Source: Bugula neritina (lineage: Eukaryota; Animalia; Bryozoa). From it: a DNA stretch of 64,000 bases. The notes under the pieces were generated by a model that did not search any database, was not told the origin of the DNA, and saw only the letters and a program-made list of their open reading frames with translations. Shown here one piece after another: positions 1 to 19,300 of this stretch. The DNA is taken from positions 17,886,259 through 17,950,258 of the forward strand of contig OZ037767.1 in assembly GCA_964035545.1 (NCBI GenBank). The letters run 5' to 3'. How positions within the stretch are numbered: the first letter of the stretch is position 1; the number at the start of each line of letters is the position of its first letter. Both the position numbers and the translations under genes were made by a program.

Positions 1-1180
1 CACTTTTAGCACATTTAGGCACATTTAGGCACTGTTTAGCACATTTAGGCACTTTTAGGCACTTTCCCGGACGTTTGGGCACTTTGAGCACATTTAGTCA
101 CATTTAGGCACTTTTTAGCACATTTAGGCACTTTTTAGCACATTTAGGCACTTTTTAGCACATTTGGGCACTTGTAGCGCATTTAGGCACTTTTAGGCAC
201 CTTTTAGCACATTTGGGCACTTTTCAGCACATTTAGGCACATTTAGGCACTGTTTAGCACATTTAGGCACTTTTAGGCACTTTCCAGCACATTTGGGCAC
301 TTTTAGCACATTTAGGCACTTTTAGCACATTTAGGCACTGTTTAGCACATATAGGCACATTTAGGCACTTTTTAGCACATTTGGGCACTTTTCAGCACAT
401 TTAGGCACATTTAGGCACTTTTTAGCACATTTGGGCACTTTTCAGCACATTTAGGCGCTTTTAGCACATTTAGGCACTTTTTAGCACATTTAGGCGCTTT
501 TTGGCACATTTAGGCACTTTCAGCACATTTAGGCACATTTAGGCACATTTAGGCACTTTTTAGCACATTTGGGCACTTTTCAGCACATTTAGGCACTTTT
601 AGCACATTTAGGCACTTTCAGCACATTTAGGCACATTTAGGCACCTTTTAGGACATTTGGGCACTTTTCAGCACATTTAGGCGCTTTTAGCACATTTAGG
701 CATAGTTAGGCACTGTTTAACACATTTAGGCACTTTCCAGCACATTTAGACACTTTTTAGCGCATTTGGGCACTTTTTAGCACATTTAAGCACTTTTTAG
801 AGCATTTAGTCACTTTTCAGCACTTTTAGGCACTTTTAGGCACTGTTTAGCAAATTTAGGCACTTTCTAGCACATTTGGGCACTTTTTAGCTTTTTTAGG
901 CACTTTCTAGCAGATTTAGGCACTTTCAGCACATTTAGGCAAATTTAGGCACTTTTTAGAACATTTGCGCACTTTTCAGCACATTTAGGCACTTTTAGCA
1001 CATTTAGGCACATTTAGGCACTGTTTAGCACATTTAGGCACTTTTAGGCATTTTCCAGCTCATTTGGGCACTTTTAGCCCATTTAAGCGCTTTTAGCACA
1101 TTTAGGCACTTTTTAGCACATTTGGGCACTTTTTAGCACATTTAGGCACATTTAGGCACTTTTTTGCACATTTGTGCACT
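1..1180 (-). repeat. Satellite A array, left arm (9-10 bp monomers; plus strand reads CACATTTAGG / CACTTTTAG), open at window start
   Basis: Continuous tandem degenerate repeats such as cacatttagg-cacttttag-cacatttagg from base 1 to 1180; this is the reverse complement of the array type at 3751-6030. Confidence 0.97.
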
Positions 1181-3750
1181 CACAGTTGGTTTAAGGTCAT
1201 ACTTTTCATTTTCTGGCTCTTTGCCAGGTGCTTTATGTTCTATATGAACAATGTTCCACTGATAGCTCGAACAGGTTGAATGTCACAGGAACAAAAAAAA
1301 TATAAAAAGATAAATAAACTTATGTTCTCCAATATACTTTTTTATTTTTTTCAAAAGCCAATTCATGTTTAAGTTATAGCTTGTTGAAAAACATAGTCCC
1401 CCTTCCACATTCTTTTCAATTTATACGCTCCTGACTTGTTATTGTGTCTCAATATGCCTTGTATTTGAGTGCTTGTTAGTCTCGCTTCACTAACTTTGCC
1501 TATACTTCACAAGTGTCAGTGCTGCTGGCTCAAAAGCTAAATGTTATAAACTGTCAGCTAAAACCCAATCTTGTATTCCTAGGTTGGTTGGCCTAAATAA
1601 AACAATAGTCAAATCATGATTTCATGTTTTAAAAATTTACTCTATTCTAACCTGCTGCCTAGCTAGTTCTATTTTTGATGTATAATTACAAAGTTTGTGA
1701 TACATTTTTTTGGCAACCATGTAATTTATAAAATGCAGTAATGGTACTTATAATATTATATTATTATCATTATAATACATTATATAGTATTATGTGTGTT
1801 TTTATTATCCTGCATAATATCTAATTTATTATTGTTGTTGTGCAAACAAGTGCAATTAACCTAGTTTTCAAAATGTACCTCTATATTATCAGAATATCAG
1901 TTTAGATATTTTCATGCTTTGTTAGGTAAACCTAAAAAAAGAGGCTGTATTCCCAAAGTAAAGGGTGTTGAACTATGAACTATATTAGATTAGCCACTCT
2001 GCTACCAAGTGCATCAGTATAATATTATATGAATAGCTCTGATGCTTTGTCTCCGGTGGCTGGCTGCGATATGATAACTTGGCCAACTTCCAAGAGTTTA
2101 AAATTGGCGCAATTATTCAAGAGGTTACATACTGCACAGAGCTAGCAGTGATAGTAACCTTGCTATTGGCAGTACTTATTACAACTGCCAGCATATAAGC
2201 TGCATTGTAGAATGCCGTTGGGGTAGGCTAGTAAAACCAAATTCTGCTCTCTAATATACCTTAGACACAATGCAGCAACATAATTGTTCATTTCAAATTA
2301 CATTGCCACCCTTACATGAGCTGTGGGCTTCATAAAGATTCATATGATTAGAGATTTATGCTATAGGCCCTATCTGTGCTAGTGTATGATGAAAATAACA
2401 CACCATTGTCAAAGTTAACTTCAAGTATGTTGTTTTCCAGAAACTCAGTAATGTCCATTTATCTCTCGCATACAAATACTTATGTAATAGCATACAGTTT
2501 AAGTTTTATTCTAGAGCACATCTGCAAACTCTACAATAAGAGCTTGCTTTACCAGTCTATTTCAGACCTGTTTTTGTAGCTAGTAATACGCAAGCTACTT
2601 ATTTTTAAACTTTTGGGTTATTTGTTCAAAACCATTAGCTTTGCTAGTAACCCGAGACTATTGCAACAGTTGACTGCTATCAACATGAATTGACAGCCTA
2701 ATAATTATAACCCTTTTGCGCGCGAAATATTTATGTAATGATAGTTACTCATATAGTGCGCGTCTTATTAACGATGACTGCGTGGTCTAGAGGTTAGAGG
2801 CGTCAGCGAGGAGTTAGTTGGTTATGGTTCAACCCTGTTTTGTCGCAATTTTTTTTGTCAACTTATGCAAATCCTACGCATGTATAATAAATATGGCTAT
2901 AATTGTAAAGTTTTTTTTAACTTTTGTTCAACAGTAAGACAACATACATGCATAATAATTAGATACTGAACACTGGACTAAACCTTAAATTGATCTTATA
3001 GAATACAATGTACTTAAAATAATCATATGTGAATTAGAGAAACTGAAAGTACACCTGCTGCTCTATAGACAGACATTTACTGACAAGACTGCAAAGTGAA
3101 GTGATTTAGCTGAAATTAACTCTGCCAAACAAACAAAGAATTATGTTGTGCTGAGGCATTTTCAATATATTATTGTAACATAGTGAGATGATTCAGCTAA
3201 GTGCTAATGTAAAACAGGGAACATTATATTGGCAGAAATCCAATAGACTGCCAATTTGTGCGAGAGGGTACTATATGTTATTGTGATAGCGCAGAGCGGC
3301 AAACGTACTAGGAATGTTATAGTCACAGGAGCGTAGCTAGAACCACCATATGAAGAATTTAGAAAATTGCAGTGAAACTTGCAAAATGGTGTATGTTTTT
3401 ACCAAATTGTGAAGAGCATGAACAGAATTTCAAAAAACAAAGAAAGTATATTAGAGAAAACATATCAAGGAATGTCAAGTTTAACTTTTATACTTTATAA
3501 AATGAATCCCCTGTGCTACAGCAGTGGAACATGGAGGGTGTAAAATTTTACTTATTATGCAACAACTTTCTCAGAAAAAATTTTATTGAAAAATTAAAAA
3601 AGTATATGAAAGAGGAATGCAAGAGCTATCTTTTCATGTAAAAGTTGTTAATGTGAGACAAAAACTGTTCGAGCTATCCCCTGGAAACCGTTTATATATA
3701 ACATAAAGCAGTGCCTGAATCTGGAAAGTAATGACCTTAAACCAACTGTG
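1181..3750. mobile_element. Putative non-autonomous DNA transposon (element 1, 2570 bp), CACAG-terminated, CMC/EnSpm-like
   Basis: Perfect 20-bp terminal inverted repeat CACAGTTGGTTTAAGGTCAT (1181-1200) / ATGACCTTAAACCAACTGTG (3731-3750). Imperfect subterminal inverted repeat with identical spacing: tgctttatgttctatatgaac 1229-1249 vs 3690-3710, gatagctcgaacag 1261-1274 vs 3665-3678, aaaagata 1305-1312 vs 3627-3634. No long ORF and no TSD (flanks CT | TG). Superfamily assignment is inferred. Confidence 0.78.
2776..2856 (+). ncRNA. Degenerate tRNA-like RNA polymerase III unit (tRNA pseudogene or SINE head) inside element 1
   Basis: A-box-like TGGTCTAGAGG (2783-2793) starts at tRNA position 8. 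B-box-like GGTTCAACCC (2826-2835) lies within a weak T-arm. The body is ~72 nt and is followed by a T8 terminator (2849-2856). Acceptor and anticodon stems are decayed, so it is not a functional tRNA. Confidence 0.55.
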
Positions 3751-6030
3751 TGCCTAAATGTGCTAAAAAGTGCTTGAATGTGCCTAAATGTGCCAAAAGT
3801 GCTTAAATGTGCCAAAAGTGTTTAAATGTGCCTAAAAGTGCCTAAATATGCCTAAATGTGCTAAAAGTGCCTAAATGTGCTAAAAAGTGTCTAAATGTGC
3901 CTAAATGTGCTAAAAGTACCTAATTGTCCTGAAAAGTGCTTGAACGGGCCTAAATGTGCTAAAAGTGCCTAAATGTGTTAAAAAGTGCCTATATGTGCTT
4001 AAATGTGCCAAAAGTGCCTAAAAGTGCCTAAAAGTGCCTAAATATGCCTAAATGTGCTGAAAGTGCCTAAATGTGCTAAAAAGTGCCAAAATGTGCTGAA
4101 AAGTGCTTAAATGTGCTAAAAAGTGCTAAAAATTGCCTAAATGTGCTAATAGTGCTTAAATGTGCCTAAATGGGCTTAAAGTGCCTAGATGTGCTAAAAA
4201 GTGCGTAAAAGTGCCTAAATGTGCCTAAATGTGCTAAAAGTGCATAAATGTGCTAAAAAACGGCTAAATGTGCCTAAATGTGCTTAAAGTGCCTAAATGT
4301 GCTAAAAAGTGCCTAAATGTGCTAAAAAGTGCCTAAACGTGCCTAAAGGTTCTAAAAGTGCCTAAATGCGCTAACAGTGCCTAAATGTGCTTAAAGTGCC
4401 TAAATGTGCTAAAAAGTGCCTAAAAGTGCCTAAATGTGCTAAAAGTGCCTTATAGTGCCTAAATGTGCCTAAATGTGCCAAAAGTGCCTAAATGCGCTAA
4501 AAAGTGCTTAAAAGTGCATAAAAGTTCCTAAATATGCCTAAATGTGCTAAAAGTGCCTAAATGTGCTAAAAAATGGTTAAATGTGCCTAAATGTGCTAAA
4601 AGTGCCTAAATGTGCTAAAAAGTGCCAAAATGGGCTAAAAAGTGCTTAAATGTGCTAAAAAGTGCTTAAATAAGCCTAAATGTGCTAAAAGTGCCTAAAT
4701 GTGCCTAAATGCGCTAAAAGTGCCTAAATGTGCTAAAAAGGTCCTAAAAGTGCCTAAATGTGCTAAAAAGTGCTTGCATGTGCCTAAATGTGCTAAAAGG
4801 TCCTAAATGTGCCTAAATGCGCTAAAAGTGCCTAAATGTGCTAAAAAGTGCCTAAATGTGCTAAAAAGTGCCTATATGTGCTAAAAGGGCCTAAATGTGC
4901 TAAAAAGTGCCTAAAAGTGCCTAAATGTGCCTAAATGTTCTAAAAGTGCCTAAATGTGCTAAAAGTGTTTAAATGTGCTAAAAAGTGCCTAAATGTGCTA
5001 AAAAGTGCCTAAATAAGCTTAAATGTGCTAAAAGTGCCTAAATATGCCTAAATGCGCTAAAAGTGCCTAAATGTACTAAAAAGGTCCTAAAAGTGCCTAA
5101 ATGTGCTAAAAAGTGCTTGAATGAGCCTAAATGTGCAAAAAGTGCCTAAATGCGCCTAAATGCGCTAAAAGTGCCTAAATGTGCTAAAAAGGTCCTAAAA
5201 GTGCCTAAATGTGCTAAAAAGTGCTTGAATGTGCCTAAATGCGCCAAGAGTACTTAAATGTGCCAAAAGTGTTTAAATGTGCCTAAAAGTGCCTAAATAT
5301 GCCTAAATGTGCTAAAAGTGCCTAAATGTGCTAAAAAATGTCTAAATGTGCCTAAATGTGCTAAAAGTACCTAATTGTCCTGAAAAGTGCTTGAACAGGC
5401 CTAAATGTGCTAAAAGTGCCTAAATGTGCTGAAAGTGCCTAAATGTGCTAAGAAGTGCCTAAATGTGCCTACAAGTTCTAAAAGTGCCTAAGTGTGCTAA
5501 AACGTGCCTAAAAGTGCCTTAATGTGCCTAAATGTACCTAAATATGCCAAAAGTGCTTAAATTTGCTAAAAAGTGCCTAAATGTGCCTAAATGTGCTAAT
5601 AGTGCCTAAATGTGCTAAAAAGTGCCTAAATGTGCTAAAAGTGCTTAAATGTGCTAAAAGTGCTTAAATGTGCCTAAGTGTTCTAAAAGTGCCTAAATGT
5701 GCTAAAAAGTGCCTAAATGTGCCTAAATGTGCCTAAATGTGCCAAAAGTGCCTAAATGTGCTAAAAAGTGCCTAAATGTGCTTAAATGTGCTAATAGTGC
5801 CTAAATGTGCTAAAAAGTGCTTAAATGTGCTAAAAAGTGCCTAAATAAGCCTAAATGTAATAAAAGTGCCTAAATGTGCCTAAATGCGCTAAAAGTGCCT
5901 AAATGTGCTAAAAAAGTCCTAAAAGTGCCTAAATGTGCTAATAGTGCTTAAATGTGCCTAAATGTGCTAAAAGGGCCTAAATGTGCTAAAAGTGCTTAAA
6001 TGTGCTGAAAAGTGCCTAAATGTGCTAAAA
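3751..6030 (+). repeat. Satellite A array, right arm (AAATGTGCT / AAAAGTGCCT / AAATGTGCCT, ~19-20 bp dimeric period)
   Basis: Continuous tandem repeats gtgcctaaatgtgctaaaa from the end of element 1 to an abrupt junction with satellite B at 6030/6031. Confidence 0.97.
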
Positions 6031-6031
6031 C

Positions 6032-6293
6032 CACTGTAACATACTGAAATACACTGCAACATACTGCAACATACTGAAATACACTGTAACAAACTGAAAT
6101 ACACGGCAACACATTGGAATATACTGCAACATACCCTAATATATTGTAATATACTGAAATATACTGCAACATACCGCAACATACTGAAATACACTGTAAC
6201 AAACTGAAATACACTGCAACACATTGGAATATACTGCAACATACCCTAATATATTGTAACATACTGAAATACACTGCAACATACTGCAACATA
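6032..6293 (+). repeat. Satellite B, first segment (10-bp monomers, local 110-bp sub-period)
   Basis: actgtaacat-actgaaatac-actgcaacat monomers; 6071-6180 and 6181-6290 are near-identical 110-bp units. Confidence 0.95.
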
Positions 6294-6341
6294 ACTAGCT
6301 GGATAGGGACAGTGATATCTATAAAATCGTTATCTTGAATC

Positions 6342-7052
6342 ATGGTTCGTAGAGCTAAATCAGCCACTAGTTCAACTAGTGAATCTACACCCGATTCATC
6401 TATCCATGGAAAGTTAGATCAGATCTTAGCAAGACTAAATGACTTTGATAGTAGGTTGAAGAAAGTAGAAATTGAACAGGCTGAAGTAATTAAAACCTGC
6501 AAATTTTTGAGCAAAGAATTTGATGATATCAAGTTACTAAGAAATGAAATGAAGTGTTTCCTAAAAGATTTTCCAGATGTGAAAGACCGTGTGGATCAAC
6601 TAGAATTCCAAGATCGTAAAAAACAGTTGACATTAAATGGAATACCACAAAAATCTGGAGAGAACTTATTACATGCCATGAAAGTTATGAGTGAAAAACT
6701 AAAATGCGAACTTCAACCCTACCATGACATAGACTCAATTTTTAGAGTCAAGACATCTGACAAAGTTATAATTAAATTTATTCACGCTCATAAACGTGAC
6801 AAGTTCTTTGGATCATTTAGAAAAAACCCTCTAAATGCAACAGACTTAGGTTTTAAAGACAACTCTAAGCTCTACATAAATGAAGTGCTGAGCAAACCTC
6901 AAGCTGCTCTTTTTCATGAGACTCGCATGTTCAAAAAAGAACATAAATACCGTTTTGCATGGACATCAAACCAAAGAATCTTCCTAAGGAAAGACAGTGA
7001 TAGTAATGCAATACAGATCAATTCGACAGATGATTTAGATGACCTCGCTTAA
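6342..7052 (+). CDS. LINE ORF1p (coiled coil + RRM-like + C-terminal domain, L1-ORF1/FP-protein-like)
   Basis: 236 aa. Heptad-rich N-half (LDQILARLNDFDSRLKKVE...VDQLEFQDRKKQLTLNGIP), then IDSIFRV...VIIKF and LYINEVLS...YRFAWTSNQRIFLRK, the motif pattern typical of CR1/L2-group ORF1. Lies directly upstream of an APE-RT ORF. Confidence 0.85.
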   Translation: MVRRAKSATSSTSESTPDSSIHGKLDQILARLNDFDSRLKKVEIEQAEVIKTCKFLSKEFDDIKLLRNEMKCFLKDFPDVKDRVDQLEFQDRKKQLTLNGIPQKSGENLLHAMKVMSEKLKCELQPYHDIDSIFRVKTSDKVIIKFIHAHKRDKFFGSFRKNPLNATDLGFKDNSKLYINEVLSKPQAALFHETRMFKKEHKYRFAWTSNQRIFLRKDSDSNAIQINSTDDLDDLA

Positions 7053-7114
7053 ACACATGATTACTCCATATCCTCTGATTTTTAATTTCTGTAACTATAT
7101 TTTTTTTCAAATTC

Positions 7115-10024
7115 ATGGAAGCACACCTAAACTGTGATCAATACACGCCAGAACAGTTTAGAAATAATATAAAAAATAATTCCAATTCTCTTACTATTTT
7201 GAATGTTAATGTACAAAGCCTTCGTAAAAATTTTGATTCCCTAGAAACATTTATGTTTAGTGTTCCTAAACCTTTTGATGTTGTTTGTATTACTGAAAGT
7301 TTTCTTTATGATAATGAAGTACATAATTTTCCCATAAATGATTATGTTTTTATAGGTAATCAGAGACAGAGTAAAGGAGGTGGTGTCGGGGCCTATGTGC
7401 GCAGTAGTGCTGTGGCTGAAGTCAAGGAAAGTCGAGCACTTTTTGCAGGCAGTGAATCTTTACATTTGGAGCTAAAGGGTGGTCTCTTTGGGTGCTTTAG
7501 GAGTGGTCTTCACCTCACAATCATTTACAGGCAACCATCGGCGGACATTGGAGCTTTTCTCTCTGACCTGGAGCAGTACATCAGTTCTTCTAATTTTCCA
7601 CATCATGTCATACTAGGTGATATCAATATCGACACTCTTAAATCCGATCCTGTGAGTACATCTTACCTCAACATCCTATCCTGCTCTCATTTTATAAATT
7701 CAATTCAGATTCCTACACGATACAATTCTTGCTTAGATCATATAAATGTTAATTTTTATGATAAATTCTTAACATCTGGAACAATAACAACAAGCATAGC
7801 AGATCACTTGCCTACTTTTATCAAAATAGAAAATTTAACTAACTATTTTAATATAACTAAATCTACAAACATTAGAAATTATAAGAAAATAAATGAAGAA
7901 CTATTTTTGAAAGATCTTTCTAAAGTAGACTGGAACTCCAAAGTATATGCCAAGAAAGATGTGAATTCTAGGTATGACAGTTTCTTTAAAATATTTATGG
8001 ATTTATGCAATAAACATGCTCCATTAGTAAAATTCTCAACAAATTGGCCACGCAAACTTAAAACAAATAAAAGACCCTGGATTAGTGTTGAATTAATTAA
8101 GCTGATGAACAAAAGGGATTATGTTTATAGACAATCCTTAAATTCCCCTCTAAACTTGAAACTTAAATTTAAACATAAAACTCTAAAAAATTTAGTTACG
8201 AAGAATTTGCGTAGATCCAAGACTTTATATTTTGAATCTTTTTTTGAAAATACTTCAGATTCTAGTAAATGTTGGAAAGTCATAAACGAACATCTAGGAA
8301 AAAATCGATCAAAGAGATTAAATGCTCCTAAAAGTTTAACATCTGAAAATATTACACTAACTGAAAATAAGGACATAGCAAACAGTTTTAATAAATACTT
8401 TACTTCCATAGGAACAACGTTATCAAAGGAATTCACTGACGACAATTTTGATTTTACAGCTCAGAAGTCAGATAAAAAACTTGATGAACAGTTTAGCTTT
8501 ACAAATATTGAAAGCACAGTCATTGAAAGCTTACTTAAAGATGTAAACCCAGCCAAAGCTGCAGGATTAGATTTAGCTCCCACCAACCTAATAAAAATAT
8601 CTGCATCTCATCTTTCAAAGCCTTTAGCTTACATTATAAACACAATTATCAATGATGGCGCTTTTCCAAATGAACTAAAAAAAGCTAAAGTTGTTCCTCT
8701 ACACAAAAAAGGCATAGCTACTGATGTAAGTAATTACCGCCCAATTTCTATACTACCTGTTTTCAGTAAGATAGCTGAAAAGATTTTAAATAAGCAAATA
8801 GTAGATTTTCTAGAAAGCAAAAATTATTTAACTGATAAGCAGTACGGCTTTAGACGAAATAGAAACACAAATATTGCCTTAATTAATCTAACAAATAAGG
8901 TTTTAAATGCCATGAACAATGGTAATTCTGTAGCTGGAATTTTCCTCGATTTTAGTAAGGCCTTTGACACAATAAATCATGAAATCTTATTAGCTAAATT
9001 AAAAATGCTCCACTTTTCAAGTCACAGTGTGAAGCTAATTAAAAATTATCTGTCCAATCGTCAACAGTCTACTATTATTAACAACACATATTCTGACTTT
9101 ATTCATATCACATGTGGAGTACCACAAGGATCCATACTTGGTCCCACACTATTCCTAATTTATATAAATGATCTTCCAGATGTGACTATGCATTTAGACC
9201 CTATATTATTTGCCGATGATACGAACCTCTTCTTTGAATCAAAAAATCTATTAAACAATATGGACGTCATAAACTGTGAATTAAAGAAAATTGAAAATTG
9301 GTGCAATAAAAATAAATTAACTGTAAATATGAGTAAAACAAACTATATGATAATCAAAACAGCGCAAAATAAACAAGATTTAAATGGCTTTGCCTTAGAA
9401 ATGTTTAACAAAAAATTAGTGGAAGTAAAATCAACTACCTTCTTAGGTATTATAATAGATTCACATCTTTCTTGGCAACAACATTGCAGCAAACTTTGTC
9501 AAAACCTAAGGCCCTTAGTAGGCTTGATAAGTAAATGTTCCAATCACCTACCTAGAAAAATTCTAATACAAATATATAACTCTTTTGTAAATTCTAAATT
9601 AACATATTGCCTAGAATCGTGGGGTAATGCAGCAAACATTTATCTTGAACCACTACATTTACTGCAAAAGAAAATACTGAGAATTATATATAAAAAGCAT
9701 CACCTTTCCCCATCTAAACCACTGTTTCTTAGTTCTTCAATCATGCCTATTCACACTCTACACAAATTCAAATTAATACTGCTCTCACATAAACTTTACT
9801 ATTCTCAACTAACACATCTCACACATAACTATCCCACAAGATTTTCAGAGTTCAGCCTACAAACTCCTCCATCATCAACTGCTGCAGGTCAACGAAGAGT
9901 GGAATTCCAATGTTCGTCGCTATGGAATAAATTGCCTAGTTCTATTCGTGCTGTGGAGAGGGAGGCTGGTTTCAAACTTGCCCTGAGAGACCATCTAATG
10001 GCAAATTTCCAGATAAAAAAATAA
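7115..10024 (+). CDS. LINE ORF2p: apurinic-like endonuclease + reverse transcriptase
   Basis: 969 aa, uninterrupted. APE motifs NVNVQSL, CITES, GGGVGAYV, IYRQP, LGDINID, PTR, LDHI, ADHLP. RT motifs NYRPISILP, QYGFR, LDFSKAFD, GVPQGSILGPTLF, FADDT, FLGIIID. Confidence 0.97.
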   Translation: MEAHLNCDQYTPEQFRNNIKNNSNSLTILNVNVQSLRKNFDSLETFMFSVPKPFDVVCITESFLYDNEVHNFPINDYVFIGNQRQSKGGGVGAYVRSSAVAEVKESRALFAGSESLHLELKGGLFGCFRSGLHLTIIYRQPSADIGAFLSDLEQYISSSNFPHHVILGDINIDTLKSDPVSTSYLNILSCSHFINSIQIPTRYNSCLDHINVNFYDKFLTSGTITTSIADHLPTFIKIENLTNYFNITKSTNIRNYKKINEELFLKDLSKVDWNSKVYAKKDVNSRYDSFFKIFMDLCNKHAPLVKFSTNWPRKLKTNKRPWISVELIKLMNKRDYVYRQSLNSPLNLKLKFKHKTLKNLVTKNLRRSKTLYFESFFENTSDSSKCWKVINEHLGKNRSKRLNAPKSLTSENITLTENKDIANSFNKYFTSIGTTLSKEFTDDNFDFTAQKSDKKLDEQFSFTNIESTVIESLLKDVNPAKAAGLDLAPTNLIKISASHLSKPLAYIINTIINDGAFPNELKKAKVVPLHKKGIATDVSNYRPISILPVFSKIAEKILNKQIVDFLESKNYLTDKQYGFRRNRNTNIALINLTNKVLNAMNNGNSVAGIFLDFSKAFDTINHEILLAKLKMLHFSSHSVKLIKNYLSNRQQSTIINNTYSDFIHITCGVPQGSILGPTLFLIYINDLPDVTMHLDPILFADDTNLFFESKNLLNNMDVINCELKKIENWCNKNKLTVNMSKTNYMIIKTAQNKQDLNGFALEMFNKKLVEVKSTTFLGIIIDSHLSWQQHCSKLCQNLRPLVGLISKCSNHLPRKILIQIYNSFVNSKLTYCLESWGNAANIYLEPLHLLQKKILRIIYKKHHLSPSKPLFLSSSIMPIHTLHKFKLILLSHKLYYSQLTHLTHNYPTRFSEFSLQTPPSSTAAGQRRVEFQCSSLWNKLPSSIRAVEREAGFKLALRDHLMANFQIKK

Positions 10025-10090
10025 TACTTTTTTAAGTTGCTAAAACTTCCAAAAACCTAAACAAAAATCTTATATAACTGTCAACCATTC

Positions 10091-10210
10091 ATGGCTCGGT
10101 GCCCCGACTAGCTACAGTGCTATTGCGCCATAGGCCCTGTCATTTTGTTTATTTTTTTTCTCAATTAATTTTTTCCCGACTATGACAAAATAAAAAACAA
10201 ACAAACAAAC
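10091..10210 (+). other. LINE 3' UTR stem-loop region, poly(A)-like signal and (AAAC)n tail
   Basis: ATGGC (10091-95) / GCCAT (10127-31) encloses two hairpins, TCGG-tgcc-CCGA and TAGC-tacagt-GCTA. A second pairing TGTCAT (10138-43) / ATGACA (10182-87) follows, then AATAAA and (AAAC)4. Confidence 0.6.
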
Positions 10211-10422
10211 ATACTGAAATACACTGTAACAAACTGAAATACACGGCAACACATTGGAATATACTGCAACATACCCTAATATATTGTAATATACTGAAAT
10301 ATACTGCAACATACCGCAACATACTGAAATACACTGTAACAAACTGAAATACACTGCAACACATTGGAATATACTGCAACATACCCTAATATATTGAAAT
10401 ATACTGAAATATACTGCAACAT
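10208..10422 (+). repeat. Satellite B, second segment (between LINE and element 2)
   Basis: 10208-10396 matches 6068-6256 base for base by eye and continues the 110-bp sub-period. Confidence 0.95.
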
Positions 10423-11986
10423 CACAGCATAGTTAAGGTCATCCCCAGTGAAATATCATCTCATAATCTAGTCTCAGTTCCTAGTTGCTATTGCTCTGTG
10501 GGCGGCATGCGTGTTGCCTACTTGTCATAATTTAGCATGAGGTTGAACAATTGCCAACAGACCATCAAAGTAGCTAGGGCTGCACCTGTTCATATTACAA
10601 CCATCGCTACAACAATCTATTGAGCAAGTATGTGGTCATGGCAAGCCTCAGCATCACCTCATTATTATTATTATTACAACAAACCAGTGGTTCGTTTCAT
10701 GTGCAATGTACTTGATGTACAAAGGAAGATAATTTTTGTAACTTCTTTTTCAACTAACCTTGTAAAACTCTTTCAGATTCAGATTCAAATGCTAAAGCTA
10801 ACTCAATATTTATCCATTTGCCTAGTCTAATAAAGTTGTTAATAATTACAGGCTTGACTACAACTTAACAAATAATTTAGAGATGCTCTTCTCTCAAAGC
10901 ATACTGTTTTTATGCTAGACTAATAATCTATCTATTCACTACCATTGACTAACTTAAAGCCAAAATTACCTTCACCATTAAAATCCTCTTCTAGTTGCAA
11001 AAACACTTCTCATTGCTAAACTATTACAATCAGTTACAGACTCTGCACAATAGTTTAGATTAGTGAAGAGACTTGCATATAGGTCAGATAGTCATGTGTG
11101 AGATTTTGTTGGTAGCTGTAAAGATCAGTTATGCAGACTTTTGTGTGGCCACTTTGAGTTTAGATGGTTTGGGTAAAGCATTTTATTGCTGCAAGTTTCT
11201 AATATAGCTAGTAGGTACTTTTGTGGTTCCATTGTACATTAGTATAAGCATTAATCAGCACTTATTGAAGTGAGTTGGAACTTGGAACTATATAAAAGGT
11301 TAGACCGTGAGCCTGTGCTTTAAATATATTCTATTCGCTCTCTGTTGTATACAGTCTAAACTTTAAAAGGTCCATTCAACCTTAAATTGCTACTAGCTAA
11401 ATGTCCAAAAATTGGCTATGAGCTGTATCTTGCTGCCTTGCACTGAGAAATAAATTTGAGGCCAGCAAACAACTGGGCTCCTTTGTACTCCTGGCAGCTA
11501 CTATCAATAGTTGGTTATCATAGCTGCGCAGTGTTCACTCAAGCATGATATCATCGGCTTGCTGTATACCAACTCAGAGCCAAGATTATCAACTATTTTA
11601 TGTTTCTAAATTTAGCATCTAATAGAAAAAGCTGCGTCTAGTTAGACTGACTGACGCTATGCTTGCCTGAGTGAGAAATCCAAGATGAACAGTTTTAATC
11701 TTAGCTAGACAAGAATTGAGAATTTGAAGAGAAAACCTCCTTAAGATAAAAGAAGATGTCAAGTGAATTTAGTTTTGTTTCCGGCCTGATAGGTGTCAGT
11801 TAATCAGCTCAGATATAACTAGCAATGCATTTTCCATTATTCTGATGCTGCAGTTATAATATTCCATAACAAGAATTGACTTAATAATTTAGGCATATGC
11901 ACCAAATTAACCAGTTTTATTCAAGTTAACACCAGATAGCCATTGCTAAAGATCAAAACGAAAATCAGTGTGGATTTTCAAACATA

Positions 11987-11992
<6 letters not shown>

Positions 11993-12042
<50 letters not shown>
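11993..12042. repeat. (TA)n microsatellite, ~25 units
   Basis: Pure TA run. Confidence 0.97.
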
Positions 12043-12045
<3 letters not shown>

Positions 12046-13687
12046 GTATGGTCAGGCATAGAAGTAGCAAGTTCAATAAATAATGCAAACATGCAGAAGG
12101 TGTAACAGCTGTGTACTTTTGTGAAGGAATAAGTCAGGGCTTTTTTATAGCAATACATCCTATAAGTATCTTACAAACATGGGGGAAATAATAGGTTAGT
12201 TCTCTAATTACTTTTCTTAAACATACATTACAATAGTGAATGTAAAAACCGATTTTGTAAAAAAGCAGAATCTATAAAAATTCAACCTGCAAAAGCCTAA
12301 CTAAAAGGCACATTGCTGGGGTGATTAGTCCTGTCAGTTATTAATAATTTTAGTTTTTATATCCGTTGATAAAAGTACTACTTTTGCAGGTAGATTCTTG
12401 ATATATAGGTGTCAGTTGTAGAGTATTATGCTTTTTAAACATAGAAATATATCGTCTTGCAAGAGTAGAGAATCTAAAGATCCTAAGAGCTGATGCTGAC
12501 ATAGAAAGGATGTGCTGAGTACACATGCTATAGCATTTCTTTGACAAAACCTAATCATCTAGTAGCCCACTTGTCTTTGGAACTCAATCTAAAAATATAA
12601 AAGGCAGTTTTCTCAATACATTGAAAAGTAATTTGCAACATTTTGAATTTGAATTAAATTGTTCATACACCACAGTTAGTACTAGAGTAGGCTAATCTAT
12701 ATTCTGTAAAATCTACCTATACGGTAATCAGATCAAAGCTGCCAGCTGGTAACTTTTTAAAAAACACAGCTCATAATTACAATTACTATTAGGTTGGATG
12801 CTCCCTTGAAATTGTATTTTTCAAATAATTTCTTAGTAGATATGATTGCCATGATGACTCCAATTCTTTTGAAACATATGCTTATAATGTATTTTAAGTT
12901 GGTCACTCACAGTAAATGTAGTTTGGTATGCAAGTAGTAGTTCAATGAGAGTTACTAAAGAGAAGATTTTTAGTGCAAAACTATATTTTCTATGAGCCTA
13001 CTCAACTACAGTACTCTAAATAATTGGAGAAAAAAAGTGAGTCAATAATAAATTTGGCTGTTTTTCTTACATAATGATAAAATGAACTCTGACAATTTTG
13101 ATCTAGTCTTACAGTCTTAGTAATAGTTCTACCATCAATGCATTCTTATTATACCATGCCTTTTTTATGAATATAAAACTCAATTTTGAAGTTTAGTTAT
13201 ACTATAATAATAATAATAATATGAATATGAATATAATATTAATAATAGATATAATACGCAGTATAGGTCTACTGTAATACTAATAGTACAACTATAGAAA
13301 TCCTATAAAATTAATAAAAAATAAATATAGGCTACTATTGCTTGAAAGCAATATGAAATATGCGAATTTGCTGAAGGAAGCAGTGGTACTCACTTACCCT
13401 TGAAGTTAAACTCTTAAAGTTAATCAAAGTACACTCTTTCATCCTAGGTTTGAGAGGTAAAAGACATTTTTCACTCCATTTTGAAATGATATTCCCACCG
13501 CCAGTTGGCAAGTTCACTTCACAGATTGCGTTTTAACATCGAATTTTTTATTTACCGAGCTAGCTTTTACTAGTAACATATCCAATCGGGCAAGATAAGT
13601 AACGCTTACAGCTACGTATGATATTATGCAGAGCAATTTGTTTGAGGACAGTGCACCGCAGCTGCGGAATGACTAGGGTAGGTTTTC

Positions 13688-14492
13688 GGGGGAGGGGGGG
13701 TGAATGTAAATTATAAACGTTCTATGTGCTTTTTTGAAAGCATTATGATAGCATACGCTTTAGTCATTTATATGTAAAATATAACCTATTGTTTTATAAA
13801 TTATAATTTACTTATTTATTTATTTTATTATTGTTTTAAAAACTTGATAAAACTTTGAACACCCCTCATAATACCACAACCACACTCCACTCCTTTAGTT
13901 ATAACCTAATTAGATTAGAAGTCACATCTTCAATACAAACAAGCTATTCCGATTGGGGGGGGGGAGGGGGTGAATGTAAATTATAAACGTTCTATGTGCT
14001 TTTATGAAAGCATTATGATAGCATATGCTTTAGTCATTTATATGTAAAATAAAACCTATTGTTTTATAAATTATAATTTACTTATTTATTTATTTTACTA
14101 TTGTTTTAAAAACTTGATAAAACTTTGAACACCCCCTCATAATACCACAATCCACTCCACTCCTTTAGTTATAACCTAATTAGATTAGAAGTCACATCTT
14201 CAATACAAACAAGCTATTCCGATTGGGGGGGGGGAGGGGGTGAATGTAAATTATAAACGTTCTATGTGCTTTTATGAAAGCATTATGATAGCATATGCTT
14301 TAGTCATTTATATGTAAAATAAAACCTATGGTTTTATAAATTATAATTTACTTATTTATTTATTTTACTATTGTTTTAAAAACTTGATAAAACTTTGAAC
14401 ACCCCTCATAATACCACAATCCACTCCACTCCTTTAGTTATAACCTAATTAGATTAGAAGTCACATCTTCAATACAAACAAGCTATTCCGAT
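13688..14492 (+). repeat. Tandem repeat, 3 x ~270 bp, each unit headed by a poly-G tract, inside element 2
   Basis: tgaatgtaaattataaacg recurs at 13701, 13971 and 14241; each unit ends aagctattccgat; the copies differ at only a few positions. Confidence 0.95.
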
Positions 14493-16020
14493 GTCTGCTG
14501 CTGTCATTAGCTTGAAACTGCAGTGAAGCTCTTATAACTGAGCTATATAGTAGGCTGAAAGTGCACTACCTATAGTTAGCTACCAATGTTATGAATTGGT
14601 GTAAGCAGTAAAGGAAATGAGTAGTATATGTGTACAGAAACTTGTACTCAAATGCTTATAGAACCCCATAGTTACGGTTATTTGAGATTCAGTCAGGTCC
14701 AAAAGAAATTGTGAAATTAAATACCCATTTATATTACATCATGCTGAATCTGGTCACATAATTGGCTATTTAAAGCTAATTGTAATTAAAACCATATTGC
14801 AATATAAAATGACCTGCCTAAGTTGCTCCTTATTGACGAGTAGTCTAGTTGGGCATTTAAGTTCAAACCATGAGCTCATTTCAGCTAAAAATAGCAGCAC
14901 CTTGTCACTGCCTATGAATGCTTGCATGGTCACTTGCCAGAGCCATTAGCAAAATGGCTTACTGCTATTGCAAGCCTGCTACATACAATCCTCCTACGTG
15001 CAAGCACTATTTATCAACCAGAAACTACTTATTTAATTGTAAGCTACCAGAATTTTAATACTATAATATTATAAAAAAAAGTTGTCTGGTAGGTGCGATA
15101 TAAGCAGAAAAGCTTAAACAGCCTAAATTCTTATTTTTTTTTAAGAAATTCTAATTTGGTAACATGTCGGAATTCTCTCTAAACTTCTTAAGCTGCATCT
15201 CACCGCCTGTAATAGGCCCAATAATACGAAATGCAAGGTTTAATTTCTCAATGCCCTCATCACTGCACATACCTCATACTTATTATACTTAGCTGATAAA
15301 ACTTTACTACTATTGTTGAAAGAAAGTTATGCAGTTACTATTCAATTGACTAAGAATTCTCTCCAACAATTTTGTAGATTCTGAAAAAAAAGTTAATGTT
15401 TTAAAAAAACAATACAGTGAGTTTGGTTACAGATATATTATTAGTATAATTTAGATTACTCTACAGAACAACAAATTTGCATTGAAACCACACACAAAAG
15501 GCATAAAATTTAGTGGCCTTAACTCTCACTAGCATCCTAAGATGTCTGGGTTATCATACAGGCTGTATTACTAAACTGCTTTGCACTAGAAAGAAACAAG
15601 TCAAAGCAAGAAATGTACGCAGGCTTCAGAAACTGCTTCATATAAATACAACTAAAATCTAGATTCAGGGTAGATTGCGCATTGTACAGCCTCGCGTCTA
15701 TATTCTATGGGCAGTACAACAATATTGCAACCACCAAGATTCCAACTACTAGCTACTGTAATAAAATAACCAGCCTCATACCGCGTTTTACTCATACCGC
15801 AGTTTACTGCAGAGATGAACTTTAACCCTTTGGTTTAGCGCGCACAACATGAATCGTAGGCCGCATTAGCTCCCTGTAATCATTATGATAGCTACAATGC
15901 AGCGCAGCTCTACCATGTTCAGCCAAGCGTGCAGACTAAGCGAGATGTAAAATTTTTAATAAAATCAGTGTATAAATTACACGTTTACACCAATTCTATT
16001 GAGGTTATCTGAAAACTTTA

Positions 16021-16292
16021 AAAAGCCTCTAATAGACAAATATCTTATAACACTATATTTTTATTTTTGCAGAGATTTGTTGCTTGGGAATTGAATAATT
16101 CGTGGGGCACTGAGACCATGTTTTTTTATGCGAAAATGGATTATTCTTGACTGTTTTTGGAGCATAAAAATGCAACGGGTTGAGTAGGTAGAGATTTTAA
16201 AAAAGCCTCGAATAGAGCAGCATAATATTTACAAGATGGTTTTTGATTTTTGATTCTAGTTTAAAATTAGTCGAGTTATGAGTGGGGCACTG
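16021..16292 (+). repeat. Diverged 180-bp subterminal direct repeat at the right end of element 2
   Basis: aaaagcctc(t/g)aataga at 16021 and 16201, and gtggggcactg at 16102 and 16282; both offsets are exactly 180 bp. Confidence 0.7.
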
Positions 16293-16362
16293 TTTCATAT
16301 ATAATTATAATGGAGCAATGAAATTACTGATTCAGTAGAAGGATGACCTTAATCAAGCTGCG

Positions 16363-19300
16363 ATACCGCAACATACTGAAATACACTGTAACAAACTGAA
16401 ACACACTGCAACACATTGGTATATACTGCAACATACCCAAATATATGGTAATATACTGAAATATACTGAAATACATTGTAAAACACTTAAAAATACTGCA
16501 ACATACTGAAAGACACTACAACTCACTGAAGTATAGTGTAATATACGGAAATGTACTGTAACATACTGATATTTACTGTAACACACTGAAATATACTGCA
16601 ACATACTGAAATACACTGTAACGTACCGAAATAAACTGCAACATACTGCAACATACTGAATTACACTGTAACATAATGAAATAAACTGCAACATACTGCA
16701 ACATACTGAAGCACACTGTAAAATATTGAAATACACTGCAAGACATTGGAATATACTGCAACACACTGAAATATACTGCAACACACTGAAATATACAGCA
16801 ACATACTGCAACATACTGAAATACACTGTACCATACTGCAACATACTGAAATACACACATTGGAATATACTGCAACACACTGAAATATACTGCAACATAC
16901 TGAAGTATACTGCAACATACTGTAACGTACTGAAACACTGCAACAAACTGCAACATACTGAAGTACACTGTACATATTGAAAAACACTGCAACACACTGA
17001 AATATACAGCAACACACTGAAATATACTGCAAAAATACTGAAATATACTTCGACATACTGCAACATACTGAAAGACACTACAACCCACTGAAGTATAGTG
17101 CAATATACAGAAATGTACTGTAACATACTGATATTTACTGTAACACACTGAAATATGCTGCAACATACTGAAATGCACTGTAACATGCCGGAATAAGCTG
17201 CAACATACTGCAACATACTGAAATAAACTGTAACATACTAAAATACCCTGCAACATACTAAAATACACTGCAACATTTTGCAACATACTTCAACATACTG
17301 AAATACACTGTAACATAATAAAATACACTGCAACACATTGAAACATACTGCAACAAACCCAAATATATTGTAATATACTGAAATATACTGCAACATACCG
17401 CAACATACTGAAAAACACTGTAACAAACTGAAATACGCTGCAACACATTGGAATATACTGCAACATACCCAAATAAATGGTAATATACTTAAATATACTG
17501 AAATACACTGTAACACATTGAAAAATACTGCAACATACTTAAATACACTACAACTCACTGAAGTATAGGGTAATATATGGAAATGTACTCTAACATACTG
17601 ATATTTACTGCAACACGCTGAAATATACTGCAACATACTGAAATACACTGTAACATACCAAAATAAACTGCAACATACTGCAACATAGTGAAATACACTG
17701 TAACATAATGAAATACACTGCAACACATTGAAATATACTGCAACATACTGAAATGTACTGCAACATACTGAAATACACTGCAACATATCGAAGTATATCG
17801 TAATATACGGACATGTACTGTAACATACTGAAACATACTGAAACATACTGAAAAATACTGAAAAATACTGAAACATACTGAAATACACTGCAACATACTA
17901 AAATACACTGCAACATTCTGCAACATACTTCAACATATTGGAATACACTGTAACATACTGAAATACACTGCGGCATACTGCAACATACTGAAGTACACTG
18001 TAAAATATTGAATTACACTGCAACACATTGGAACATACTGCAATACACTGAACTATACTGCAACAAACTGAAATATACTGCAACATACTGCAACATACTG
18101 AAATACACTGTAACATACTGTAACATACTGAAATACACTGCAACAAACTGCAACATACTGAAGACACTGAACATATTGAAAAACACTGCAACACACTGAA
18201 ATATACTGCAACACACTGAAATACACTGCAAAATACTGAAATATACTTCAACATACTGCAACATACTGAAAGACACTACAACTAACTGAAGTATAGTGCA
18301 ATATACAGAAATGTACTGTAACATACTGATATTTACTGTAACACACTTAATTATACTGCAACATACTGAAATACACTGCAACATACTAAAATACACTGCA
18401 ACATACTAAAATACACTGCAACATTCTGCAACATACTTCAACATACTGAAATACACTGTAACATAATGAAATACACTGCAACACAATGAAATATACTGCA
18501 ACAAACTGAAATATACTGCAACATACTGAAATGTAGTGCAACATACTGAAATACACTGCAACATATCGAAGTATATCGTAATATACGGACATGTACTGTA
18601 ACATACTGAAACACACTGAAACATACTGAAACATACTGAAACATACTGAAACATACTGAAATACACTGCAACATGCTGCAACATGCTGCAACATATTAAA
18701 GTACACTGTAACATATTGAAATACACTGCAACACATTGAAATATACCGCAACACACTGAAATATACTGCAACGCATCCAAGTACATCGTATTATACGGAC
18801 ATGTACTGTAACATACTGAAACATACTGAAACATGCTGAAACAAATTGAAATATACTGTAACACACTGAATAATACTGCAAAATGCTGAAATTTACTGTA
18901 ACACAGTGAAGTATACTGCAAAATTCTGAAATTTACTGTAACATACTGAAATTGGCCTCAACATACTCAAATATACTGCAAGATACTGCAACATACGTAA
19001 ATACACTGTAACATATTGAAATACACTGCAACATACTGCAACATACTGAAGTTCACTGTAAAATAATGAAATACACTGCAACACATTGGAATATACTGCA
19101 ACACACTGAAATATACTGCAACAAGCTAGAATACACTGCAACATTCTGCAACATACTTCAACATATTGAAATACACTGTGACATAATAGAATACACTGCA
19201 ACACATTGAAATATACTGCAACAAACCCAAATATATGATAATATACTGAAATAGACTGCAACATACCGCAACATACTGAAAAACACTGTAACAAACTGAA

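Follow-up and report, generated by a model that had tools for sequence, protein, structure and literature searches.

What are the two islands that interrupt the satellite DNA at the start of this window, the 64,000-nucleotide stretch of the Bugula neritina genome analysed here (C3:17886259-17950258 of a 216-Mb eukaryotic assembly, over the whole of which the genome-wide counts below were taken), and what put them there? Island 1 (1181-3750) lies in one satellite, A, and island 2 (10423-16362) in another, B; neither island is assigned a strand. A reading of the window made without database searches (the sequence-only reading) had proposed that one terminal signature, CRCAG-N5-TTAAGGTCAT, marks all four island ends, and that the islands represent two non-autonomous families mobilised by one CMC-like transposase. 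We consider it likely that island 1, a copy of a 2.55-kb family, and island 2, a copy of a 5.3-5.9-kb family, are indeed non-autonomous cut-and-paste transposons with an end signature retained from an autonomous lineage in the CMC-Transib clade, whose intron-rich gene would encode a DDE transposase with a RAG1/CACTA-like fold.

The pattern CRCAGNNNNNTTAAGGTCAT matches the window exactly four times, at 1181-1200 (+), 3731-3750 (-), 10423-10442 (+) and 16343-16362 (-), always at an island end, and does not match any of 100 dinucleotide shuffles of the window. This bears out the proposed signature; the spacers described for it (TTGGT, TTGGT, CATAG and CTTGA) and the CGCAG tip of the fourth end were also correct, and satellite begins directly outside every end, A flanking island 1 and B flanking island 2. 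The left terminal inverted repeat (TIR) of island 1 (1181-1207, 27 nt, + strand; CACAG, spacer TTGGT, TTAAGGTCAT) is 89% complementary to its right TIR (3724-3750, - strand), which carries the 20-nt signature common to the left TIR, and at the left end weaker inverted similarity extends past the TIR to about 1355. The left signature of island 2 (10423-10442, +) reads CACAG, spacer CATAG, TTAAGGTCAT, and its right signature (16343-16362, -), read inward, CGCAG, spacer CTTGA, TTAAGGTCAT. At position 2 of this last tip a G replaces the A found in nearly all other copies, a mutation that has probably made the right end of island 2 uncleavable.

Four end types have the same bases at signature positions 1-5 and 11-20 (the two ends of the 2.55-kb or short family, and the left and right ends of island 2 together with the 12.4-kb autonomous lineage described below), and the 5-bp spacer differs at most positions between them. 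The layout first described, a fixed block, a variable 5-bp spacer and a second fixed block, holds over three end types, and a second autonomous lineage has it with two changes. By analogy with RAG/Transib and CACTA biology, it is reasonable to regard the tip as the putative cut site and the 10-mer as the putative binding site. The comparison of ends gave no sign of a 12/23-type spacer asymmetry. From position 21 inward the 12.4-kb lineage has a left and a right end of unrelated sequence, and both short-family ends resemble the latter over ~110 nt (z 3.7-6.0), so that the short family reads as a right-end/right-end derivative. Within the window, both island 1 ends are likewise weakly similar to the right end of island 2 over ~110 nt (z 3.7-6.0 versus shuffles), which accounts for a looser motif order that had been noted at the right ends; against the left end of island 2 no significant similarity was found beyond the 20-mer. 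The claim that the islands are otherwise dissimilar therefore stands for their interiors, which share no blastn similarity, and fails for this weak but significant subterminal stretch. As had been stated, neither interior holds a transposase: no long open reading frame (ORF) is present in either island, and none of at least 80 aa in island 1. A resemblance of satellite A itself to a degenerate end signature (both have CAC and a TTTAGG/TTAAGG word, in a different register) was seen by inspection only, set aside and not counted as evidence. A full-text literature search for the end sequences returned unrelated primers only.

Genome-wide, CRCAG-N5-TTAAGGTCAT has 481 matches (241 forward, 240 reverse), mostly in inward-facing pairs, and the reversed signature, used as a control, has none; the scan suggested by the sequence-only reading thus yielded paired copies elsewhere that are flanked by 2-bp duplications. 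About 402 ends have the spacer TTGGT, TTAGT or TTCGT and pair 2.55 kb apart, giving ~200 copies of the family of island 1; copies with the spacer CTAGT, one base from TTAGT, probably belong here too. The spacer does not begin with T at 79 ends, nearly all of them CATAG/CTTGA pairs, typically 5.3-5.4 kb, that make up the family of island 2. Beyond the CACAG, the flanks of different copies are unrelated unique sequences.

Target duplications were tabulated for 28 copies, 26 of them independent and 2 repeats or near-repeats. Every one of the 24 independent copies not touching satellite A is flanked by a 2-bp duplication, and the duplicated dinucleotides (GT, TT, TG, TA, AA, AC, TC, GA, AT and CA) show no sequence specificity. 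One apparent 3-bp duplication is attributed to chance, and one TC duplication was read directly from the sequence, the script having missed it by a one-base offset. A copy in the subtelomere of scaffold C2 could be compared with a paralogous empty site in the C3 subtelomere (C3:17876259-17886258, upstream of the window); the empty site has a single TC, which confirms both element boundaries and the 2-bp size of the duplication. Island 2 is flanked by AT on the left (10421-10422, in satellite B) and on the right (16363-16364), and the phase of satellite B continues across the insertion. With no transposase inside, 2-bp duplications and dispersed pairs, the islands are non-autonomous DNA transposons with CAC...GTG ends, as the sequence-only reading had supposed.

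Island 1 is 95-98.6% identical to other copies, and members of the short family diverge from their consensus by only 0.4-2.7%, so the family is young. Island 2 shares 92-97% identity with its nearest relatives and ~80% with a second subfamily. It is longer than they are because a 270-bp unit has expanded to three tandem copies (13688-14492), which align to one stretch in the other members compared. Most long pairs with this end type are 5.3-kb copies carrying nested long terminal repeat (LTR) retrotransposons.

Two arrangements of short-family copies were also recorded. At C2:7257-13322 two copies lie in opposite orientations, one inside the telomeric array (duplication AA) and the other ~75 bp into the subtelomere (TC); the idea that the telomere was healed at a copy here by addition of (CCCCAAA)n was dropped, since there are two copies with normal 2-bp duplications as well as the empty paralogous site. 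At C1:14962344-14967480 one copy (14962668-14965227, duplication TA) is nested within another (AC) inside satellite B.

The source of a matching transposase was sought among long copies. A 12.4-kb element (C6:7085149-7097590, target duplication TT) and a 15.9-kb element (C4:15502832-15518728) are 98.6-99.3% identical to each other and share the signature. They resemble island 2 only over ~1.3 kb on the left and ~1.5 kb on the right, at 70-78% identity; over the first 60 nt, the 12.4-kb element and island 2 are nearly identical on the right and differ by a few changes on the left. Exons were searched singly or as stop-free segments. When a profile built from 13 full-length homologues (829 positions) was searched against all stop-free segments of the 12.4-kb element, 13 collinear segments on its + strand spanned profile positions 6-810 of 829. 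These segments keep WHDHSD, FFSGDNPARQ, a C-I-C pair, EPLHD, H-CLTV-H and AESAER, giving the order D, D, Cys pair, LH, H(4)H, E. The same order characterises the CACTA, Mirage, Chapaev and Transib transposases and RAG1, and the hallmarks of the clade are CAC or CA..TG ends, 2-5-bp duplications and C(2)C, LH and H(3-4)H motifs (PMC4079192, PMC12730594). In both the 12.4-kb element and the family profile, the cysteine pair stands at the expected place after the second D, as C-x-C (PCICG).

A search with the largest core exon gave 426 homologues at E<=1e-3, among them predicted proteins from the scallop Argopecten irradians and the lancelet Branchiostoma lanceolatum. An AlphaFold model of one homologue (1011 aa, 41-sequence alignment, mean predicted local distance difference test score (pLDDT) 85, predicted template modelling score (pTM) 0.75) was compared with the PDB using Foldseek, and all matches at E<=0.001 were chains of RAG1, BbRAGL or HzTransib, with E values of 1e-8 to 1e-7 for many RAG1 chains, 1.7e-5 for BbRAGL and 1.7e-4 for HzTransib, and template modelling (TM) scores by target of 0.46-0.53. 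In the ESM Atlas the same model fell beside plant and cnidarian Transposase_21 (CACTA) clusters and RAG1 clusters (TM by target 0.55-0.65). From the motif order and the fold neighbours of the homologue, we would place the system in the CMC-Transib ('CMCT') clade, with a footprint most like that of Mirage (2 bp). The long copies with a DDE transposase for which the sequence-only reading had suggested a search were therefore found, in the sense that an element sharing the signature has the CMC/Transib motif order, the RAG1/CACTA-like fold coming from the homologue model. The N-terminal open segment of 324 aa has no Pfam match, a single exon searched against PDB sequences did not find RAG1, and a search of the whole genome with PF12940 gave no match, its controls being equally silent. 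Around one homologue on a scallop chromosome and another on a 5.7-kb contig, a search for the end motif found neither inverted repeats nor a TTAAGG block.

We propose that the 12.4-kb element, at its site elsewhere in the genome, produces a transposase that would recognise the conserved 10-mer at positions 11-20, cut at the conserved CAC(AG) tip and reinsert the excised DNA through a 2-bp staggered cut, the target sequence mattering little. Island 2 would then be a gutted relative of the 12.4-kb element, and island 1 a member of a short, abundant family with both ends of the right-end type. Which block is bound and which is cut, the chemistry of cleavage and the movement of the 2.55-kb family by this particular transposase are what we infer in this scheme.

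A further proposal of the sequence-only reading was that the elements favour, or are retained in, satellite DNA. By rough extrapolation from the density of exact 19-mers in the window and scaffold C1, satellite B amounts to ~10-12 Mb (~5-6% of the genome) and, by the same rough k-mer approach, satellite A to ~55-130 kb (~0.03-0.06%). Under strict flank patterns at least 72 of the 481 ends adjoin satellite B (20 of 79 in the family of island 2) and ~10 adjoin satellite A, corresponding to an enrichment of ~2.6-fold or more in B and roughly 30-80-fold in A. The satellite-flanked copies cluster, mainly in one region on each of most large scaffolds, in what looks like centromere-like DNA. The enrichment thus holds, modestly for B and strongly for the ~10 ends in A; the preference does not extend to the bulk of the insertions, at least 80% of the ends lying in non-satellite DNA.

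Whether this reflects a transposase that actively prefers satellite or heterochromatic DNA as its target is a separate matter, and we regard such a preference as rather unlikely. The large majority of ends are outside satellites, and a sample of nine copies from the first 10 Mb of C1 fell without exception in unique DNA; where copies do lie in satellite their insertion points vary within the repeat unit. Several satellite copies have identical flanks and were therefore multiplied by segmental duplication of the array, not by insertion. The intact retrotransposon in the array of this window and the LTR elements nested in satellite-resident copies indicate a general tolerance of insertions, and the satellite totals behind the ratios are rough k-mer extrapolations. 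In favour of targeting are the ratios themselves, the copy inside a telomeric repeat array, and the observation, from a small sample, that satellite copies are as young as others and so are not merely old survivors. The simplest explanation for the many copies in satellite arrays is that gene-free repeat DNA tolerates insertions; a slight bias of insertion may add to this.

Several observations weigh against the identification of the 12.4-kb element as a CMC-Transib transposon that drives both families. Neither single exons nor ten full-length homologues gave a relevant Pfam match (Transposase_21, Plavaka or DUF1258) at E<=0.01, and the 13-homologue profile found no RAG1 among PDB sequences; the system is thus placed by its motifs and fold and not by homology of sequence with a named superfamily, and likeness to named CACTA-type members is confined to fold and language-model features. 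The modelled fold is that of a homologue with ~37% identity in one exon and not that of this genome's own protein, and the cysteine pair is C-x-C, as opposed to the C(2)C of the literature. An exon search of the genome found the cognate lineage as one intact copy, a damaged copy in the 15.9-kb element and an 84%-identical copy with a stop codon, leaving the tested exon intact in a single copy. Finally, the short family and the autonomous element are alike only in the 20-mer and in ~110 nt of weak subterminal similarity, and a second autonomous lineage could be the real driver of the short family.

This second lineage is represented by an 11.0-kb element (C1:13964138-13975164; ends CACAG-GATAG-TTAAGGGCA, duplication AT), whose exon has 70% amino-acid identity to that of the 12.4-kb lineage. 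Five copies of the exon score identically and contain no stop, which suggests that the lineage was active very recently and is probably the most recently active of the two, and its ends carry the signature with just one or two changes in the 10-mer. We nevertheless think it unlikely that this lineage, or a lost relative, moves the 2.55-kb family and that the 20-mer reflects common descent only. The 10-mer of the short family matches the 12.4-kb lineage at 10 of 10 positions versus 8-9 of 10 for the second lineage, and its subterminal 110 nt score z 3.9-6.0 against the right end of the 12.4-kb element versus -1.3 to 1.8 against the ends of the second lineage. Of the original proposal of two non-autonomous families and one CMC-like transposase, then, the families, a cognate element and the clade are in hand, and movement of the 2.55-kb family by the 12.4-kb transposase is the part that we deduce.

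Island 1 departs from the rule in that it has no target duplication (flanks ct / tg) and its satellite A flanks are mutually inverted: the array on its left (1-1173, +; 10-bp period, CACATTTAGG/CACTTTTTAG) and that on its right (3749-6030, -) run in opposite directions. The duplication is absent from four of six copies touching satellite A versus none of 24 elsewhere (exact probability ~5e-4), which suggests a real tendency to rearrangement at such copies. The three besides island 1 lie well inside their scaffolds, and the copies without a duplication sit at satellite orientation switches or at A/B boundaries. At C1:15433332-15462748 two short-family copies in the same orientation (15433332-15435877 and 15458877-15462748) lie 23 kb apart in satellite B, neither with a duplication; each is bordered by satellite A on the side facing the other copy and by satellite B on the far side. 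Another copy without a duplication is at C3:12326839-12329404. Possible causes are recombination between copies and aberrant transposition; in the case of island 1 alone, a wrong join close to the contig end is a third.

Some features speak for a false join. The first base of the window directly follows a 200-N assembly gap, only 1,180 bases before island 1, and island 1 is a 200-copy repeat liable to be joined wrongly by an assembler. The piece before the gap (C3:17876259-17886258) consists of ~7 kb of (TTTGGGG)n, ~1 kb of near-pure G that looks like a sequencing artefact, and a short repeat run. Because the first 7.4 kb of scaffold C2 is the same repeat, as (CCCCAAA)n, this is probably the telomere repeat of the organism, and its internal position at 17.88 Mb of C3 points to two pieces joined in scaffolding or to fused chromosomes. 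We still judge it improbable that the odd context of island 1, with its missing duplication and inverted flanks, is an assembly error, given the three comparable copies far from scaffold ends and the four-of-six versus none-of-24 contrast.

If the rearrangements are real, copies of a transposon with a RAG1-like fold may serve as breakpoints that reshuffle the CAC-rich satellite A and neighbouring satellite B, a suggestion that we hold as doubtful, below any of the alternatives discussed so far. Aberrant transposition could use CAC motifs of the satellite as cryptic ends, much as RAG uses cryptic recombination signal sequences (RSSs); recombination between copies could equally cause such reshuffling. 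Were it true, a RAG1-like transposon would be remodelling centromere-like satellite arrays.

Least probable by far is a Foldback-like element in which island 1 and its inverted satellite A arms form one unit with the CACAG internal: the arms do lie in opposite orientations and in nearly the same repeat register, but dozens of other, dispersed copies have unique, unrelated DNA and 2-bp duplications directly outside the CACAG, the arms are no more alike than random satellite A stretches (86-87% versus 82-90% among others), and satellite A changes orientation on C1 without any element, so this reading was rejected. By the same similarity values, 1-1173 and 3749-6030 are not a recent palindromic duplication. 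The orientation change is at C1:14685800-14688000, where satellite A reverses near position 2000 of that interval at a near-palindromic junction without a transposon, having first passed gradually into a longer repeat variant of ~110 bp.

The remainder of the window is satellite B (ACTGCAACAT/ACTGAAATAT type) and one further element. Satellite B occupies 6033-6293 and 10207-10422 on the left of island 2, and on its right 16363-64000 (+), a 47.6-kb host array with a 10/20-bp period that runs to the end of the window; all three stretches have one orientation. Between the first two lies a long interspersed nuclear element (LINE, a non-LTR retrotransposon; ~6294-10206) with ORF1 at 6342-7052 (236 aa, Baculo_FP_2nd-like) and ORF2 at 7115-10024 (969 aa, RVT_1), both open. 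A tRNA-like stretch near 2780 was ruled out as a tRNA, tRNA and Rfam scans of window positions 1-17000 having given no match.

Taken together, the results describe a young and probably still active transposon system in an invertebrate genome, with an autonomous element whose RAG1 fold is predicted from a homologue model and at least two parasitic non-autonomous families. As transposon biology the system is ordinary and leaves the picture of transposon classes unchanged; only its association with satellites might prove more than routine. The two-block end signature and 2-bp footprint offer a comparison point for the co-evolution of RAG/Transib-type ends and their enzyme, and the families will be useful for annotating the repeat-rich, centromere-like regions of the assembly.

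How does the system compare with those already known? It differs from Tc1/mariner elements, which duplicate TA, in its varied duplications (GT, TT, TG, AA, AC, TC, GA, CA and AT, as well as TA), and from Foldback-like elements, whose long TIRs consist of tandem repeats belonging to the element, in the unique flanks outside the CACAG of other copies. With the CMC/CMCT group it shares CAC...GTG ends (all beginning CACAG here, apart from the one mutated CGCAG end in the window), a short target duplication (2 bp, within the 2-5 bp of the group), a DDE transposase with the order D, D, Cys pair, LH, H(4)H, E, many non-autonomous derivatives and ends that resemble each other subterminally, and the structural neighbours of the homologue model include Transposase_21 (CACTA) clusters. 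It differs from the group in lacking a match to the Pfam models for CACTA (Transposase_21), Plavaka or DUF1258, in its C-x-C cysteine pair and in a transposase gene split into at least 13 coding segments. Within the group, the 2-bp duplication is that of Mirage, whereas CACTA elements duplicate 3 bp and Chapaev elements 3-4 bp (PMC4079192).

Transib, RAG-like transposons and RAG1 provide the best, and nearly the only, solved-structure matches of the homologue model (RAG1, BbRAGL and HzTransib), and have in common with this system the CAC tip, two conserved end blocks separated by a spacer, and the Cys and His motifs of the zinc site. Transib and RAG-like elements duplicate 5 bp, whereas the duplication here is 2 bp throughout and the spacer is 5 bp at both ends, without 12/23 asymmetry; unlike RAG-like transposons, the system has no RAG2-like gene, and hidden Markov model profiles of the homologues detect no sequence similarity to RAG1. 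The heptamer-spacer-nonamer layout of the RSS has its counterpart in a CAC-initial block at the putative cut site, a second block further inward and a spacer variable in sequence but constant in length, with the difference that the blocks here are 5 and 10 nt, the spacer 5 nt and the spacing identical at both ends. Compared with typical miniature inverted-repeat transposable elements (MITEs), the families are far larger (2.55 kb and 5.3-5.9 kb) and their interiors are mostly unrelated to the autonomous element. Like MITEs and cross-mobilised derivatives such as dSpm with En/Spm or Ds with Ac, they have no genes and retain nothing of an autonomous partner but its ends, the shorter family is the commoner, and one family has two like ends.

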